A DNA stretch of 64,000 nt from Blastocladiella emersonii ATCC 22665 (lineage: Eukaryota; Fungi; Blastocladiomycota): positions 1,364,001-1,428,000 of the forward strand of contig JANHCV010000001.1 in NCBI GenBank assembly GCA_025594325.1. Reading direction: 5' to 3'. The translations under genes and the position numbers were made by a program. This document shows positions 34,217 to 41,537 of the stretch, piece after piece. How positions within the stretch are numbered: position 1 is the stretch's first letter; the number at the start of each line of letters is the position of its first letter. The notes beneath the pieces are model-generated. The model was not told the DNA's origin. It made no database searches and saw only the letters and a program-made list of their open reading frames with translations.

Positions 34217-35320
34217 TCACGCAAAACGGCCACCGTGCGCCGTAGGCGACGTCGGGCTCACGCTCGCGGACGCCCCAATGAGGTTACTCGTCGACGGGGC
34301 CAGGATCCCGGGCGAGCTCTTGATGGTGCTCGTCGCGCCCAGCGGCGCCAGCCGCACGCCCGACGATGCCTGCACCGACGACGTGGTGCCGCCCGTCGCC
34401 GAGCGATCTTGGCTTTGCGACCCGGTGCCCGACTTGCCCGCGCCGGCGCGCATGATGCTGCGGAGCCGCTGCAGGAACGTGCAGATGACGCGGAGCCGGA
34501 GGCTTTCGACTAAGAAGATCGAGGCCCAGAGGTAGTCGAACGTCGGATCGACCTGCACGGTGATGTTTGCGGCAATCATGAGCGCACACTCGACGAACAG
34601 CATGACCTGGCTCTGCCGGATCGCGGACGTGAGACCCTCGCGCAGGACCGGCCCGCCGTCCCTGCGCTTGGTGAGATCGTTGACGCGGTACAGGAACACG
34701 GCGGAGATGAACCCGTTGATCAGCGCGTCGCCCATCGACCAGTCTGATGGCGGAGAGCAATGACAAGTTAGTGTGCAGCCACGGCGAACGAGCAAGCCGG
34801 CAGCGACCGACGACGCGACGCGACGCGACGTACAGTTCAAAATGGTGCCGGCAACGCCGACCGGGTCGATGGGAACCCGCTTGCCGATCTCGACCCAGAA
34901 GAAGATGGTGTCGATGAACTTGACGAGGGCACTGAGCGCGGCGAGCCCAGCGCATAGCTGACTGATGCGTGGGAGCACGCCCTTGCAAAACCGCCATAGT
35001 CGGAACCCGTTGAGGAGAACGAGACCAGCCCCGTCAAACAGCGCCCAGGTCGCGCCGGAAAGGTCCCAGCCCACGGCCGTCGCGCGGCGGAAGCCGTCGG
35101 CATCGACCCCCTCGCTCATGTCGGCCAGGAGCGCCATGAAGCGCGACGTGATGTCGAGCATGTGCGCGATGCAGATGCCGCACATGGCTGCCATATAGAA
35201 GGACTTGGTCGACCGGAACGACTCGTACGCGACGAGCAGCGTCCCGAGGTCCAGCGTGAGCGTGATGCCGAACGCGAACGAGCCGCTGCTCCAGAGAAGC
35301 ACCGGTTCCGTGAATCCCAT
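34217..35320 (-). CDS. Predicted 7TM (GPCR-like) membrane protein, paralog 1 of 4
   Basis: Seven hydrophobic segments and a Ser/Thr-rich C-tail. One in-frame intron at 34744-34833. Motifs LLNGFRLW, WSMGDALIN and SLRLRV are shared with the next three genes. Confidence 0.75.
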   Translation of the reverse strand: MGFTEPVLLWSSGSFAFGITLTLDLGTLLVAYESFRSTKSFYMAAMCGICIAHMLDITSRFMALLADMSEGVDADGFRRATAVGWDLSGATWALFDGAGLVLLNGFRLWRFCKGVLPRISQLCAGLAALSALVKFIDTIFFWVEIGKRVPIDPVGVAGTILNCTSRRVASSVAAGLLVRRGCTLTCHCSPPSDWSMGDALINGFISAVFLYRVNDLTKRRDGGPVLREGLTSAIRQSQVMLFVECALMIAANITVQVDPTFDYLWASIFLVESLRLRVICTFLQRLRSIMRAGAGKSGTGSQSQDRSATGGTTSSVQASSGVRLAPLGATSTIKSSPGILAPSTSNLIGASASVSPTSPTAHGGRFA

Positions 35321-35636
35321 TGCAGCGAGTGACTTTTATATAGCGTGTTTGATGGATGATATGTCAAGTTGGAGCGTGAGGGAGCTGCGACAAGGGTCGT
35401 TCGCGATCCAGCGGGAGACGTCAAGGTGACAACGGCGCGCGCTCCGCGGACATCCTCCCGAGCCCATTTCAGCCTTCGTGGTTCAAACGTGCTGCGTCAC
35501 TCCGCAGCCCCGTGCCCAATCAGCTTCGCAGGAGCCTGACCGCGTTGCGCCACTCACCCGCACCCCAAGCCCGCCGAACACAAGCAAATGGTGCTCAAAG
35601 ATCAATTGCCCGGTATATTGGTCAGGGCCTTCGCTC

Positions 35637-36826
35637 TTACTCAGCACGGCCGAGGAGAAGCGAAGGAGAGGTCGGCGAGACCGCGCTCGTCGCGATCAGC
35701 GAGGCAGTTGTCGCGGGACTGAGCCCGCCCGACGATGCCTTCATGAGGCCGCTAGCCGACGGCGCCATGCGGTTCCCGACCATACCGCGCTGGTTGCTCG
35801 AGGCCGTCGCCGAGGAAGTCTGGTCGGCGCTGTTGGAGCCCGCGTTGGTCCCGCCGCCGTTCTTGGCCTGCATGATGTTACGCAGCTGGATCAGGAAGAT
35901 GCAGGTGGCCCGCAACCGGAGCGACATGATCAAGAACAAGCCGGCCCACAGCGGGTCAAACATGGGCTCGACCTGGACCGTGATATTGGCGGCCAGCATC
36001 AGCACACACTCGAGCGCGAGGAGGAACTGCGACTCGCGGATGGCGCGCTGAAGGCCGGCGCGGAACACGGGTGCCCCGTCCTTGCCGTTGCCGGTCATCT
36101 CCTGGACTCGCCACAGAAAGACGCCACAGATGACACCGTTCAGGATCGCATCTGCCATCGACCAATCTACGCGACAGAGATCAGACCAGCATCGTACTCG
36201 CACAGCTGCCGAACGTACAGCAAAGCAATGTTCCGGCAGTCCCGACCGGGTTGATGGGCTTGCGAGTGCCAATTTCGACGTAAAAGTAGACGGTGTTGAT
36301 GACCTTGACGAGGGCACTTACGCATGAAAGGCCAAGGCACGCGAGGCTGATGCGAGGGTAGGCGGCGCCGCAAAACTTGTACAGACTAGCGGGAGCAATG
36401 AGTTAGCTATGCCCGGAGAAGAGACACCTTGAGCACGTACCGCCACCCGTTCAGTAGAACGAGGACGCACTTGTCGAGCATCGCCCATGTCGCGCCGTTG
36501 AAGTCCCAGCTAATCCCGCGCGGATGCCGAGTGCCGTCGGCGGCGACGCCTTCCACAGCGTCCGTGAGGAGCGACATGGTCCGAGACGTCGTGTTCATCA
36601 TGTGCGCGAAGCACACAAACATGATGCCGGCCATGTACCACGACTTGGTCGACCGGAACTGCTCGTAGGCGAGCAGGAGCGTACCCGAGTCCGCGGTCAG
36701 GTTAATGCCATAGGTGAAGCACCCCGTGCTCCAGACGAGGGTCGGCTACGAGCGGTTTGTGGTGCGTGAGTGCCGATGACTGTGATGCATAAGGTCGCCG
36801 CGCTCGCATACTTCAGTGATTCCCAT
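35637..36826 (-). CDS. Predicted 7TM (GPCR-like) membrane protein, paralog 2 of 4
   Basis: Introns 36746-36811, 36386-36440 and 36167-36218 give MGITEPTLVWS..LLNGWRLYK..YWSMADAILN..SLRLRA, colinear with paralog 1. Confidence 0.75.
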
Positions 36827-36957
36827 TATGATGCGTGAAGTGCAGTGTGTCTGCTGGGAGAGTGAGCCGCAGCGAGGCGCCCGAGGTTTTTCAATCTCGC
36901 GACGAGCGGTCACCAGCAAGTCAGTCAGTTCTCCGAAACACGTGGGAGGTGGCGCGG

Positions 36958-36992
36958 TGCGAGACATGCGAGACATGCGAGACATGCGAGAC
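36958..36992. repeat. 9-bp tandem repeat (TGCGAGACA, about 3.9 copies)
   Basis: Read directly; 130-165 nt upstream of the paralog 2 ATG. Confidence 0.85.
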
Positions 36993-37148
36993 GCGTTGCG
37001 CCACGTTGAAGCAGAACAACGGACAATGACCCACTTGCCAAAAGTTCAGGTTGGAGACTTTTTTTTTTGAAAAAAAAGACCTATGTATAGTAACTACCGT
37101 CACTCGCGGCATCCGTGCTCCGCCGGTCGCAACTGACCGACTCGCGTG

Positions 37149-38376
37149 TCAATCGTCGTCGCCAGCCTCGGAACTCGCGCGAGACTGCGATACGAGCGCG
37201 GTAGCCGTCGAGCTGTGTACCATGCCCGTCGCCGATTGCGCTGCCTTGAAGGAGGCGACGACCGTCGGTGCCGTGACGCGCGCGCTGGCCGAGCTCTCAG
37301 TTCCGCTCGACGAGCCGCGCCCGCGCTGCGAGGTGCCGTTCTTGACCTTTCGCGACATGATCTCGCGGAGGGTTTGGAGGAACGAGCACATGACGCGCAG
37401 TCGAAGAGACTACACGCGACGAGAGCGAGTACGGACGGGAGCGATGAGTCGGGTGAGGGAAGAACGTGCGCGGCCATGAGCGTACCTCGGCGAGGTTGAG
37501 ACTTCCCCAGCTCGGGTCCCAGTCGGGATTGATGACAATGACGACCAGATTGGCGGCAAGAAGGCACGAGCACTCGACGACCAGCATCAGCTGGTTTACG
37601 CGCACGGCCGTGAGCAGCCCGCCGCGGTACGACTTTTGGTCGCCCATGAGCACGCGAAGGTGGTAGAGGAACATGGAGCTGATCCCGGCCTGGATGACGG
37701 CGTCCATGAACGACCAATCTACATGCGAAGCTGTGAGCCGTCGACACGCATCGCTGGCGCAGGAAACGTACACGGCAAGAGAGTCGCGGCCGGGCCGGTG
37801 AAGTCGAGCGGCTTGAACGTGGCAAACTCGACGTAGAACAAGATGCAGCTAATGACCTTGAGCGCGGCGCTGGCGACCGCGAGGCCGAGGGAAACCTTGG
37901 CCGCCCGCGGCGACGTCTTGTGGCTGCTCGTCCACAGGCTACAGAACCGCGAGTGAGATCCGAGCACATCACTTGATCACGGTCCACAATCAACGTACCG
38001 GGCGCCGTTCAGAAGCACAATCCCACCGGCACCGATCCATGAGGCCGTGGCCCCGATCATGTCAAACGTGACGGCCGACGAGAACCGATTCCCCTCGGGC
38101 GTGAGCCCGAGCATCGCGTCGGTGCTGCGCGCGAACGCAATGCACGTTGACTCGAGCGCGTGCGCCGCGCTGATGATGGCCAGGGCGAGCATGTACTTGG
38201 ACTTGGTCGCCGCGAACGACGTCAGGGCGGCGATGCACGTCCCAATGTCGAGCGCGTTGACGAAGCCCCAAATGTACGAGTTTGTCGATATGACAAAGAT
38301 TGGCTACGCGAGTTTGATCCATCAGTGGGCTGATTTTGAGTTGCATGGAGTGGGCGCCTACATCGGTGAAACCCAT
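37149..38376 (-). CDS. Predicted 7TM (GPCR-like) membrane protein, paralog 3 of 4
   Basis: Four GT..AG introns give MGFTD/PIFVIS..TKSKYML..LLNGAR/LW..YWSFMDAVIQ..NLAE/SLRLRVMCSFL. Confidence 0.75.
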
Positions 38377-38651
38377 TTTTATGATGATGCTTGATCAGGG
38401 GAAGCTTTTGCCTGGCAGGAGTTTCGACGCGTTCAAGAGCCTGTCGGTGCCTCGCCGATGCAAGGCCAGGGTCTCCCGCGCGAATGCCTGGGCTGCGTTG
38501 GAAGACGCTGTGAGACAGTCACGTGTTCTGAACGACGCGCCTCGTTTCAAGTTTGCCGCCGGGCAGAACGGCGTGGCGGGCTTGAGACGACAGGCATACA
38601 ATGGAAAGCCCTTTAGGCGAGTATATCACACGACACTCTCGCGCTGGGTCC

Positions 38652-39895
38652 TCACTGAGGGCCATCCATGGCCGCCGTCGCCAGCGGGATCGGCGAGCCC
38701 TTGCCGCCCGCGCCGCCGCCGTGAAGGAGCTTGGTCGTGGACGGGTGGGTGATGGAGCCCGTGCGCGAACTGCTGCTCGTGGTTGCACCGCCGCTGTTGA
38801 TGGACCCATGCTCGCCGCGCGGAGCCGTGCCGGACTTGGACTTGCGACTCATTATCTCGCGAAGCGATTGCAGGAACGAGCCGAGAACACGTAGCCGAAG
38901 AGACTACACGGTAGAGACGAGTAATCAGTGGTTAGAGAAATTCGAAAGTAAGTCGACGGTGATGGACGCACATCCTGATTGAGACGATGATGGTCGGCCA
39001 GATGCGATGATGGGTTAGTGGTGGCGGACGCGAGGGGCCAGACGATGATGGCGGCGTACTCCGAGGCACAGCGTTCCCCACATCGGGTCAAAGTCGGGGA
39101 TCACCTGGACGACGAAGTTCACGGAGATGAGGTAGAAGCACTCGATGGCCAGCATCGCCTGGTTGAGCAGCATGATCTTGGACAGGCCCTGGCGCTGGAC
39201 GTGGTCGTTATCGCCGCCCGTCATCGAGCGCAGGTAGAAGAGGAACGTCGAGCTAATGCACGCGTTGATGATCGAGTCCAGGATTGAGAACCCTATACGA
39301 TCACGCACGCGCGAGTCAGCAACAGCGGCGGCCTGTCGAACAGTGGAGGACTTACACGAGAGCGACACGTTGCCGGGGCTATCCCACGCGATCGGCTTCA
39401 TGGACATGGTTTCGATTATGAAGAGAATGGAGCTGAGCGTCTTGAGCGACGCGCTGAACACGGCCGCGCCGAGGCACACCTTGGCCGCGCGCGGCAGCGC
39501 CTGCCGGCAGGTGCGCCAGAGTCGGTAGCCGTTGAGAAGCACAATACCACACGCCGCGATCCATGAGGATGTGATGCCGAGGAGCGCAAAGGTCATGGAC
39601 TGCCAGGAACGGATGCCCTGGGCATTCAGCCCCGGCGTGATGGCTCGGTAGCGGCCGAGCGAGATGAACGTGTTCTCGAGCGCGTGCGCGATGCTGACGG
39701 CCGCGAGCGCCAGCATCACGCGTGACCGCGACGTGTAGTACGACGCGAGCGCCGAGGCCGACGTCCCGAGGTCCGTCGCGACGATAAACCCCCAGATGAA
39801 CGCGCCGTTCGACCAGGTGAACAGGACCTACGCGGACGGACGTGAGGGTCGAGAACTCGCGGGAGCCGCTTGCATACTGTTGTAAACGATGACAT
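38652..39895 (-). CDS. Predicted 7TM (GPCR-like) membrane protein, paralog 4 of 4
   Basis: MSSFTT/VLFTWSNG..LLNGYRLW..WFSILDSIIN..DPMWGTLCLG/(D)/SLRLRVLGSFL, with a probable 3-nt micro-exon at 38972-38974. Confidence 0.75.
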
Positions 39896-40087
39896 GGCGG
39901 ATATATTGACAACGAAGAGAGGATCCAGGCCGTGGTCAAGCGACCCTCTTGAGGAAACGAGTGCCCGCAGACAGTGCGAGACGGGCCAGGAACTCGGAAC
40001 AGGCGCGGGAGACAAATCGACGTGTCGCGCGCGTGTGACATCCGAGGTATGATGATTTGTATTACACTTGGCCAGAGATACACTACG

Positions 40088-41537
40088 CTACGCCGTCAGC
40101 GACTTGACGAGCTGCTCCTTCCACGCGAGATACTCGGCAAACCGCGCGCCGTGACGAGGGTCCATGAGCGGGATCATGTGGTAGAATCCGACACCGCGGC
40201 GGGCCTTGCTGACGAGCTTGGCGGGCGCGAGCGGCTGTGCCGGAGGCGGGGGCGCGAACGGCGCGGATTCGGCCACAGAAGCCGACTGATCCGGCGCGGC
40301 AGCAGCGGGAGCGGCGGTGCGGCCGCGTGGCGTGCGGAGCGGGAGGCGGATGACGGGCACCAGTTTGCGCGCGCTCTTGGCGGGGCGAGGCGTGACGAGC
40401 TCGTCGGCCGGTTGGTCCGCGGCCATCGGAGTGCGCGATGGAGTCGCAAGTGTCCGAGTCGATGGCCGGCGCGTCGGGGTACCGGGCGCCGCGCCAGTTT
40501 CGGGTACGAGAGGAACGAGCGGTTCGGAGGAGGCGGGCGCGGACACGCCGAGAAGGTCAAGAGCAGAGCGAGGGGAGTTGGCTGCAGCCGCGCGCTGCTC
40601 AATGATCATGCGCGTGCGCTGCAGGAGGCTGAGCGTACCCGGCGACGTCAGTCCGGCAGGGCGCGGGACCGACGTGACGTTGGACAGCGGGCGACGCGCC
40701 GAGAGCGGTGGGGGCGCGGGTGTCGAGGAGGCGACAGTTGCGGGGTCGTTCTCCTCCTCGCCCTCAGCGTCGGTGCGGGCGCGCTTGCGCGAGGACTTGG
40801 CCGGGGTCGAGGGGTCAAGACGCGACTTGAGCTGGTCGGCGCACTCGGTCCGCAGCCGCGCAACGAGAAGGTCAAAGGCGTCGGTGCGCACGCCGAGCGT
40901 CTTGGCGACGTCCGACTTCTTGAGCCCATTCTGCAAGTCAGCTCGTATTAGCGTCAGTACTAGCGTTGCTGCTGCAACCAGCTGATTCCGTACCTTGCTC
41001 CCGGAACCGAGCACAAAGAGCGCGGCGCACTGGTACCCGAGCCGCAGGTCGCTCTCGTCCTGCGTCGCGTTGAGCTCGCCGCGCTGGCGGAGGACAGCGA
41101 GCGTCGACTCGGCGAGACGCTCGATAAAGTCGCGGTCGACGAGCGCGGCGCCGAGCTTGATGAGGATGTCGCCAAACGTCTTCTCGCGGATGCGTAGACC
41201 GGGCACGTTCTGCTTGATCGAGTTGACGGCGGCCGAGAGCGAGGTCTCCTGCTTGGCCGTGCGCACCTGGAGATGCTGCTTGTGGTCGAGGCCGATGCCG
41301 CTCCTACGAAGAAATCGGGCGTGAGCCGACGCTTCAAGGCAGGGACGAGTATGCGGACGCATACTCCTGGCACGCGAGCTTCACACAAGCGCGGTAGACC
41401 ATCTCGGGGTCGCGGCGGTTGGACCCCTTGAGCTTGGCCGTGTAGACGCTCTGGATCTCCTGGGCGCGCTGGAGGACCGCCTCCCGCACGGCGTCGTCGT
41501 CCAGCGGCAGGGGAAGGTGCATGGATGTGCTATTCAT
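40088..41537 (-). CDS. ORC6: Origin recognition complex subunit 6-like (TFIIB-like repeats plus C-terminal helix)
   Basis: Helical N-terminal repeats (ACVKLACQ; YQCAALFV), a basic low-complexity linker and C-terminal EYLAWKEQLV resembling the ORC6 (D/E)YxxWK motif. Introns at 41304-41364 and 40931-40993. Confidence 0.6.

Follow-up and report, generated by a model that had tools for sequence, protein, structure and literature searches.

The DNA examined here is a GC-rich stretch of 64,000 nucleotides (nt) from the blastocladiomycete fungus Blastocladiella emersonii ATCC 22665 (contig JANHCV010000001.1 of assembly GCA_025594325.1, positions 1,364,001 to 1,428,000), hereafter the window. Between window positions 34217 and 39895 its minus strand carries an array of four consecutive paralogous genes, G1 to G4, which are transcribed in the order G4-G3-G2-G1 (Table 1) and are separated by gaps of 275-322 nt. 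An earlier sequence-only reading of the window had proposed four consecutive minus-strand genes with colinear products at this site. The gene models bear this out, giving exact coordinates and colinear products of 337, 338, 326 and 324 amino acids (aa) for G1, G2, G3 and G4, respectively. The array consists of four real, intact, spliced genes. A six-frame scan of the window revealed no further copy or fragment of the family.

The splice models rest on sequence signals, on colinearity with paralogs and orthologs, and on agreement with deposited models. All 11 introns of G1-G4 are of the GT..AG type, measure 50-156 nt and mostly begin with a fungal GTAYGY-type donor. The sole intron of G1 (90 nt, phase 1) is in frame and lies immediately ahead of the WSxxD motif of the fifth transmembrane helix (TM5). 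The family profile matches both G1 exons, as it does every exon of G3. Each array protein starts with a homologous M-G-(F/I)-T-(E/D), and the putative first exon of G2, five codons long (MGITE), was placed by homology to the intronless N-terminus of G1. Under the simplest model of G4, TM7 is one residue short unless a 3-nt micro-exon is used. The candidate micro-exon (GAT, Asp) lies within the third G4 intron, which at 156 nt is unusually long. Its use would split this intron into parts of 85 nt (GTACGC..CAG) and 68 nt (GTGCGT..TAG), each with a CTAAC-type branch motif, and the Asp would fill family position E242 (G1 numbering throughout), where 35 of 53 members have E and 8 have Q. Two genomic contigs from public DNA runs, possibly derived from the same sample as the assembly, cover the entire 5.8 kb array with zero differences. 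The three public runs examined yielded genomic contigs and no spliced joints.

G1 is the only array gene that is correctly annotated, its spliced model being identical to the deposited one. G2, G3 and G4 are not annotated as genes and are buried in a single deposited model of 1296 aa (P0002). Residues 1-430 of this model belong to the upstream ORC6-like gene; residues 431-665 are identical to G4 residues 7-241, residues 666-963 to G3 residues 6-303, and residues 964-1296 to G2 residues 6-338. The fusion omits the tiny first exon of each gene and the last part that contains the stop codon. We regard the 1296-aa fusion as an annotation artefact, because truncated seven-helix units strung together would make little topological sense and because every unit has a homologous start of its own. 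The internal junctions of G2-G4 are residue for residue those of the deposited fusion and thus agree with an independent model. A word-indexed protein search returned G1 alone, whether it was queried with the whole open reading frame (ORF), the seven-transmembrane (7TM) core or a 54-sequence profile. This search was blind to G2-G4 because these paralogs lie inside the 1296-aa fusion, outside its length filter.

The motifs that the sequence-only reading had listed were for the most part recovered from the spliced products. DxGT, AHxx(D/E/N)xT, GxxxxGxR, VLLNGxRL(W/Y), a Lys in TM4, Q..L..EC, SLRLR and FLxxLRxIM occur in all four proteins. T(K/R)S holds apart from G4, which has SRS; PxFDPxW holds apart from G1, where FDY replaces FDP; and the TM5 motif D..I(N/Q) holds apart from G2, which reads D..LN. 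The family profile matches the four units with E-values of 1e-118 to 1e-138, so chance cannot account for their similarity. In their cores, G1 and G2 are 59% identical and G3 and G4 50%, versus 35-43% between pairs, in agreement with the predicted pairing of paralogs 1/2 and 3/4. In a maximum-likelihood tree of 50 family members, the array genes form one supported clade, ((G1,G2),(G3,G4)), the sister of which is an environmental sequence, and the proposed diversification by tandem duplication was upheld. The array very probably arose by local tandem duplication, in which the ancestor of G1/G2 and the ancestor of G3/G4 were formed first and each was then duplicated. The gene order G4-G3-G2-G1 together with the tree fits two successive single-gene tandem duplications and does not fit duplication of a block.

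G+C content at third codon positions (GC3) is 0.83-0.88 in the array genes. The ratio of nonsynonymous to synonymous substitution rates (dN/dS) is below 1 for all pairs (range 0.39-0.83; 0.39 for G1/G2 and 0.55 for G3/G4), with dS compressed by the extreme GC3 and the ratios indicative only. The phase-1 intron before the TM5 motif W-S-x-x-D is common to G1-G4 and to the copies read from Allomyces, B. britannica and Sorochytrium, which supports both common descent and the gene models. Presence of the other introns is patchy. The intron after codon 5-6 is absent from G1 only, the intron at the TM3 end is found in G2 and G3 and is absent from G1 and G4, and the intron before SLRLR is found in G3 and G4 only. 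These differences are best read as losses, since the TM3-end and pre-SLRLR positions are also occupied in relatives of other genera.

An exhaustive search through 1.84 billion protein cluster representatives, made with a profile built from the four paralogs, returned 72 proteins at E<=1e-3, 49 of them at E<=1e-10. We traced the origin of 37 of the 72 matches, the weakest and most divergent included: two are the window's own, 34 come from Blastocladiomycota and one lies on a metagenome contig. The organisms are Allomyces macrogynus, A. arbusculus, A. javanicus, Catenaria anguillulae, Sorochytrium milnesiophthora, B. britannica and B. emersonii. Matches without a traced origin fall inside traced clades in the tree. 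At HMMER sensitivity the family is Blastocladiomycota-specific, every relative traced to an organism belonging to this phylum, and the suggestion of a lineage-specific family was thus confirmed. The description of the family as unrecognised also held: Pfam models (hmmscan) matched neither the four window proteins nor 27 relatives above threshold, and source names are 'hypothetical' or 'integral membrane protein'. PDB sequence searches with family profiles gave nothing significant, returning only a Na/K-ATPase fragment and one microbial-rhodopsin helix pair. No description of this family was found in the literature searched, which is not proof of absence. These proteins constitute a new, unnamed family within a well-known fold, restricted to one phylum; 7TM families confined to one lineage are common.

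At least nine copies are present in B. emersonii: the four of the array, two plus a fragment at a second locus, and three dispersed genes. Many members occur in the Allomyces species. Tandem arrays recur in the family, and other members are single genes (Table 1). The 281-aa environmental relative, closest to the G1-G4 clade, is without the usual family introns and may be transcript-derived or come from an intron-poor relative. Four longer relatives (P0019, P0024, P0049 and P0053) carry differing extra domains (partial Pkinase, SPA/Afi1/Avl9, WD40 and Voldacs). We rejected these domains as a functional clue, as all are different and they most likely reflect further fusions of gene models with neighbours. 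Two Allomyces members bear the automatic label 'G-protein coupled receptors family 1 profile', which we treat as a lead only. A G-alpha gene lies about 4 kb downstream of the Sorochytrium array, probably by coincidence. In the B. emersonii array itself, the G3-G2 intergenic region contains a 9-nt tandem repeat of about 3.5 copies (in the minus-strand reading) beside a palindrome-like stretch made of a T-run and an A-run. A 30-nt piece of this region recurs on another genomic contig (994 nt) of the DNA runs and is thus a dispersed short repeat.

Table 1. Coordinates of the array genes, associated features and family members at other loci. Positions without a locus name are those of the window.
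Feature	Position	Strand	Length or product	Exons	Remarks
G1	34217-35320	-	337 aa	35320-34834, 34743-34217	deposited as H9P43_000499
G1 intron	34833-34744	-	90 nt		phase 1
G2	35637-36826	-	338 aa	36826-36812, 36745-36441, 36385-36219, 36166-35637	introns 66, 55, 52 nt
G3	37149-38376	-	326 aa	38376-38362, 38303-37999, 37938-37772, 37718-37486, 37409-37149	introns 58, 60, 53, 76 nt
G4	38652-39895	-	324 aa	39895-39878, 39827-39356, 39292-39060, 38903-38652	
Third G4 intron	38904-39059	-	156 nt		
Candidate micro-exon of G4	38972-38974	-	3 nt		GAT (Asp)
Deposited fusion (P0002)	35637-41522	-	1296 aa		regarded as artefact
ORC6-like gene	about 40088-41362				upstream of G4
9-nt tandem repeat and adjacent T-run/A-run stretch	about 36965-37075				G3-G2 intergenic region
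Dispersed repeat piece	36968-36997		30 nt		
Sorochytrium milnesiophthora array	L004 6019-10253 (JAVQLU010000008.1)	+	four head-to-tail copies		annotated as a 717-aa fusion and a 286-aa gene
Second B. emersonii array	L005 6070-7965 (JANHCV010000004.1)	+	two tandem copies		annotated as one 488-aa protein
B. emersonii family fragment	L005 9070-9429	-			inside a gene model annotated with lipase/OPT domains
Environmental relative	L006 23-868 (JGI metagenome 3300073434)		281 aa		uninterrupted ORF on a 982-bp contig with short flanks

The structure predicted by AlphaFold with 54 homologs is a seven-helix bundle (predicted local distance difference test score, pLDDT, 91.7; predicted template modelling score, pTM, 0.89); with the four paralogs only, pLDDT was 72.7. 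The seven hydrophobic segments seen earlier in the sequence correspond to seven predicted helices (residues 12-38, 41-70, 80-112, 117-146, 156-188, 198-227 and 236-265). Among 50 full-length members, the net charge of loops 1, 3 and 5 and of the post-TM7 stretch is +1.8 to +2.6, and that of the N-terminus and loops 2, 4 and 6 is -0.2 to -1.3. From this strict alternation the N-terminus is predicted to lie outside and the C-terminus inside, the orientation that had been anticipated. The N-terminus is indeed very short, at about 10 residues, and holds no domain. The C-terminal tails were correctly described as Ser/Thr-rich; they comprise 65-77 aa, of which 30-34% are Ser or Thr, and have few hydrophobic residues. 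The FLxxLRxIM stretch, which had been taken for an amphipathic helix following TM7, is present in all four proteins but is modelled as a straight continuation of TM7 and not as a separate helix.

Several positions are conserved throughout the family. TM3 has N104 and R107 close to its cytosolic end, TM5 has D168, N172, S176 and F179 along a single face, and TM6 has E214; the D232-P233 turn into TM7 and E242 in TM7 are conserved as well. R245, also in TM7, is invariant (Arg in all 53 members), and a hydrophobic F252-L253-x-x-L256 stripe lies in the basic end of this helix. D168, E214 and R245 sit at similar depth, 9-13 residues below the outer helix ends. Judged by helix depth and periodicity, they may form a buried acid-acid-base cluster at the level of the ligand pocket usual in G-protein-coupled receptors (GPCRs). 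Among the helical parts, conservation is lowest in the outer halves of TM2-TM4 (0.24-0.31 versus 0.39-0.44 for the inner halves), as would be expected of a diversifying pocket wall.

We compared the predicted fold with known structures by two independent methods. The best 50 Foldseek matches in the PDB are all GPCRs (classes A, B, C, F, T and adhesion; template modelling score, TM-score, about 0.4-0.6), consistent with the GPCR-like fold proposed from the sequence. Among 48,161 chains searched with VIA-align, the fungal pheromone receptor Ste2 (7ad3_B) ranked first (Z 19.6, 252 of 272 residues), about 4 Z units above the taste receptor TAS2R14 (Z 15.5). A plateau at Z 12-14 followed, made up of class A receptors, AdipoR2 (13.9), TMEM87A (13.5), designed GPCR-like folds and microbial rhodopsins, with many class A, B and C receptors at Z 12-13. 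As the tool gives Z values up to about 13 as background for helical bundles, only Ste2 and perhaps the taste receptors stand out. Shape matches in the ESM Atlas were an unnamed Basidiomycota cluster (TM-score 0.79), Fung_rhodopsin (Pth11-like, 0.73) and DUF6534 (0.67), and among AFDB clusters DUF7703 scored 0.64-0.66; DUF6533, also a predicted structure, reached 0.68. Protein-language-model features, computed separately for G1 and G3, ranked DUF7703 highest (0.95 and 0.92), followed by a chytrid 7TM cluster (about 0.90) and by STE2 (0.84, a score within the tool's stated chance range and of lead level only). On these models Ste2 and the 7TM families of fungi appear to be nearer in fold than the class A receptors of animals. 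Taken as one statement, that the array holds genuine genes of a phylum-restricted family with the predicted topology, a GPCR-type seven-helix fold and the conserved residues listed above is very probable.

Ste2 (PDB 7ad3; PF02116) is the best solved match (rmsd, root-mean-square deviation, 4.6 Å), and its helix arrangement is the one that the predicted model most closely resembles. Like Ste2, the new family is of the fungal 7TM type, and its predicted topology also places the N-terminus outside and a tail rich in Ser and Thr in the cytosol. Ste2 is likewise without the class A motifs DRY and NPxxY. The two differ in that identity in the structural alignment is 12% and the N-terminus of the new family is so short. 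Ste2 is typically single-copy, whereas a genome holds many paralogs of the new family, with tandem arrays among them. N104/R107, D168, E214 and R245, as read from the alignment, are the new family's own signature. The STE2 profile (PF02116) gave no match at E<=10 in the window proteins or at E<=1 in 27 members, and Ste2 was not returned by the PDB sequence search with the family profile.

Pth11-like proteins (PF20684, Fung_rhodopsin), which form fungal GPCR class XIV, are fungus-specific, highly expanded and largely orphan 7TM proteins, often with an N-terminal CFEM domain. They are among the closest predicted folds (TM-score 0.69-0.73 over 243-255 residues, rmsd about 3.8-3.9 Å). The new family differs from them in having neither a PF20684 match nor a CFEM domain. 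Pth11-like receptors are reported to be exclusive to Pezizomycotina (PMC12842992). DUF7703 (PF24802, Ascomycota) is nearest to both G1 and G3 by language-model features (sharing 179-204 of 256), and DUF7703 and the basidiomycete DUF6534/DUF6533 (PF20152/PF20151) are among the nearest predicted folds (TM-score 0.57-0.68). In contrast to the new family, which occurs in zoosporic fungi, these families are from Dikarya, and hmmscan returned none of their models for the family members scanned. On computational evidence, DUF6534 of Agaricomycotina was put forward as a new GPCR class (PMC12842992). A full-text literature search found no paper mentioning DUF7703. The comparison places the family but does not explain it, since DUF7703 and DUF6534 are themselves without demonstrated function.

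Class T receptors (TAS2R14/46) and class A GPCRs (PF00001) resemble the family in overall fold (Foldseek TM-score 0.5-0.6), short N-termini, a ligand pocket within the bundle (predicted in the family), tandem chemoreceptor-style families and a basic residue at the inner end of TM3. The sequence-only reading had equated this last residue with the Arg of DRY. A conserved Arg does stand at this site, but as a positional analogue only, because DRY, CWxP and NPxxY are all absent. Their counterparts are N-G-x-R-L-W (TM3 end), x-x-E-C (TM6) and E-S-L-R-L-R (TM7), and of these only the Arg is analogous in position. A lone match to 7tm_1 (PF00001) in exon 2 of G4 (19.2 bits against a threshold of 30.5; 0 of 27 members at E<=1) was not counted. 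By our own reckoning of the model layout, it pairs TM2-TM4 of G4 with the model's TM3-TM5 and so is shifted in register by one helix.

The array proteins are most likely cell-surface sensors. We assign the receptor mechanism outlined here a probability of about 0.5. A small ligand would bind in an outward-facing cavity, walled by the extracellular loops and by the outer, little conserved halves of TM2-TM4. The floor of the cavity would be the buried polar cluster of D168, N172 and S176 (TM5), E214 (TM6) and E242 and R245 (TM7, below the D232-P233 turn). The change would be relayed to N104/R107 at the cytosolic end of TM3 and to the basic amphipathic end of TM7, which may couple to a transducer in the cytosol, a heterotrimeric G protein being the most probable one. 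The disordered Ser/Thr-rich tail in the cytosol could serve as a handle for phosphorylation and desensitisation. Ligand binding, G-protein coupling and a role in zoospores are what we infer for these proteins. Repeated tandem expansion, as in the four Sorochytrium copies and the second B. emersonii array, would be in keeping with what is seen in chemoreceptor families, and the chemoreceptor idea put forward for the array proteins is plausible. A link to sirenin or amino-acid chemotaxis is speculation.

Several observations weigh against a receptor function. No sequence-level link to any characterised receptor family emerged from the Pfam and PDB sequence searches, and the class A microswitch motifs are missing. 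The GPCR fold is shared with non-signalling proteins at Z 12-14 (adiponectin-receptor hydrolases, microbial rhodopsins and TMEM87). The putative buried charge cluster is deduced from helix depth and periodicity, not from contacts measured in the model, and the difference in conservation between outer and inner helix halves is overall not significant (p = 0.08). The dN/dS ratios show only moderate constraint, with dS distorted by the GC3 of the array. A GPCR-type fold that serves trafficking, lipid handling, transport or scaffolding (of the TMEM87/GOST, RTA1-like, THH1/TOM1 or PAQR type) is the chief rival and is possible, if rather unlikely. AdipoR2 and TMEM87A are among the structural matches, clusters named THH1/TOM1/TOM3 turn up in the feature and fold searches, and the nearest fungal families, DUF7703 and DUF6534, offer no demonstrated function; an acid-acid-base cluster conserved in the membrane core could equally handle ions or protons. 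However, the AdipoR2 and TMEM87A matches rank well below Ste2 and below the taste receptors, and the best 50 Foldseek matches are all GPCRs. The family has neither a GOLD nor a luminal N-terminal domain, its N-terminus being so short, and shows no match to the internal 3+1+3 repeat of SWEET or PQ-loop folds. A PAQR hydrolase in particular is unlikely, as no His column reaches 60% conservation, which leaves no PAQR His/Asp zinc site, and as the predicted topology is N-out; PAQR proteins are N-in. The family's long cytosolic tail, rich in Ser and Thr, and its repeated expansion in tandem would be more usual for receptors.

That the proteins are highly diverged true Ste2 homologues, acting as blastoclad mating or gamete-attractant receptors (for example for sirenin or parisin in Allomyces), we consider improbable. 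The clear lead of 7ad3_B over all other solved chains, the recurrence of STE2 clusters in the language-model searches for G1 and G3, and the many members in Allomyces would suit such homology, but PF02116 finds no match, the structural alignment retains little identity and the feature score lies within the chance range. To our knowledge B. emersonii has no sexual cycle, and this, together with its nine or more copies, fits a general sensor family better than a mating receptor. B. emersonii is phototactic, and retinal-binding photoreceptors or pumps akin to microbial rhodopsins were also considered. Several microbial rhodopsins reach Z 12-14, and the sole weak PDB sequence matches of the family profile are microbial rhodopsins (E 0.08-0.6, one helix pair). 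These E-values are not significant, the Z values fall within the background for helical bundles, and the family was rejected as type I rhodopsins because it has no conserved TM7 Lys, the invariant R245 standing at position 245 instead; a retinal-based function is barely conceivable. The known photoreceptor of B. emersonii is the rhodopsin-guanylyl cyclase fusion BeGC1 (PMC9730499), which also weighs against it. Decaying duplicates, or artefacts of assembly or gene prediction, might be suspected where the deposited annotation handles the locus so badly and the simplest G4 model lacks a residue in TM7. This is very improbable in view of four intact frames with canonical introns and every family-wide conserved residue, GC3 as in coding sequence, dN/dS below 1 for all pairs, single genomic contigs that cross the array without differences, and intron positions common to the Allomyces, B. 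britannica and Sorochytrium relatives.

Beyond the cell-surface sensor function preferred here, the family might represent, in zoosporic fungi, the branch of an ancient receptor superfamily spanning the fungi from which Ste2, Pth11-like proteins, DUF7703 and DUF6534 also arose, and might at the same time supply the chemoreceptors of blastoclad swimming cells, for amino acids or nutrients in B. emersonii and for sirenin and parisin in Allomyces. We regard this combined proposal as unlikely. Zoosporic fungi swim toward nutrients, light and, in Allomyces, mating attractants, and we know of no chemoreceptor identified in them. Pfam-type models have assigned three rhodopsin-like, two adhesion-like and 78 glutamate-like GPCRs to A. 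macrogynus, and blastoclads and chytrids were reported to have metazoan-like GPCRs and not Fungi-specific ones (Krishnan et al. 2012, PMC3251606). A survey of 1,357 genomes found fungal GPCR classes reduced in early-diverging fungi (PMC12842992). The B. emersonii genome paper counted 54 GPCR genes in eight orthogroups defined via PF00001/IPR000276 and mentioned tandem duplicates (PMC9730499). Pfam-based surveys would miss the family described here, in part through the merging of tandem copies into chimeric gene models in reference annotations, and the annotation error at the array locus is worth correcting.

The family adds a sizeable phylum-specific set of proteins with a GPCR-type fold; Allomyces, Catenaria and Sorochytrium have many of them and B. 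emersonii has at least nine. Its closeness in predicted structure to Ste2, Pth11-like proteins and DUF7703/DUF6534 hints that fungus-specific 7TM receptors may predate Dikarya. For work on zoospore and gamete chemotaxis and on pheromone receptors, it would provide a short and concrete list of candidates in a tractable model.

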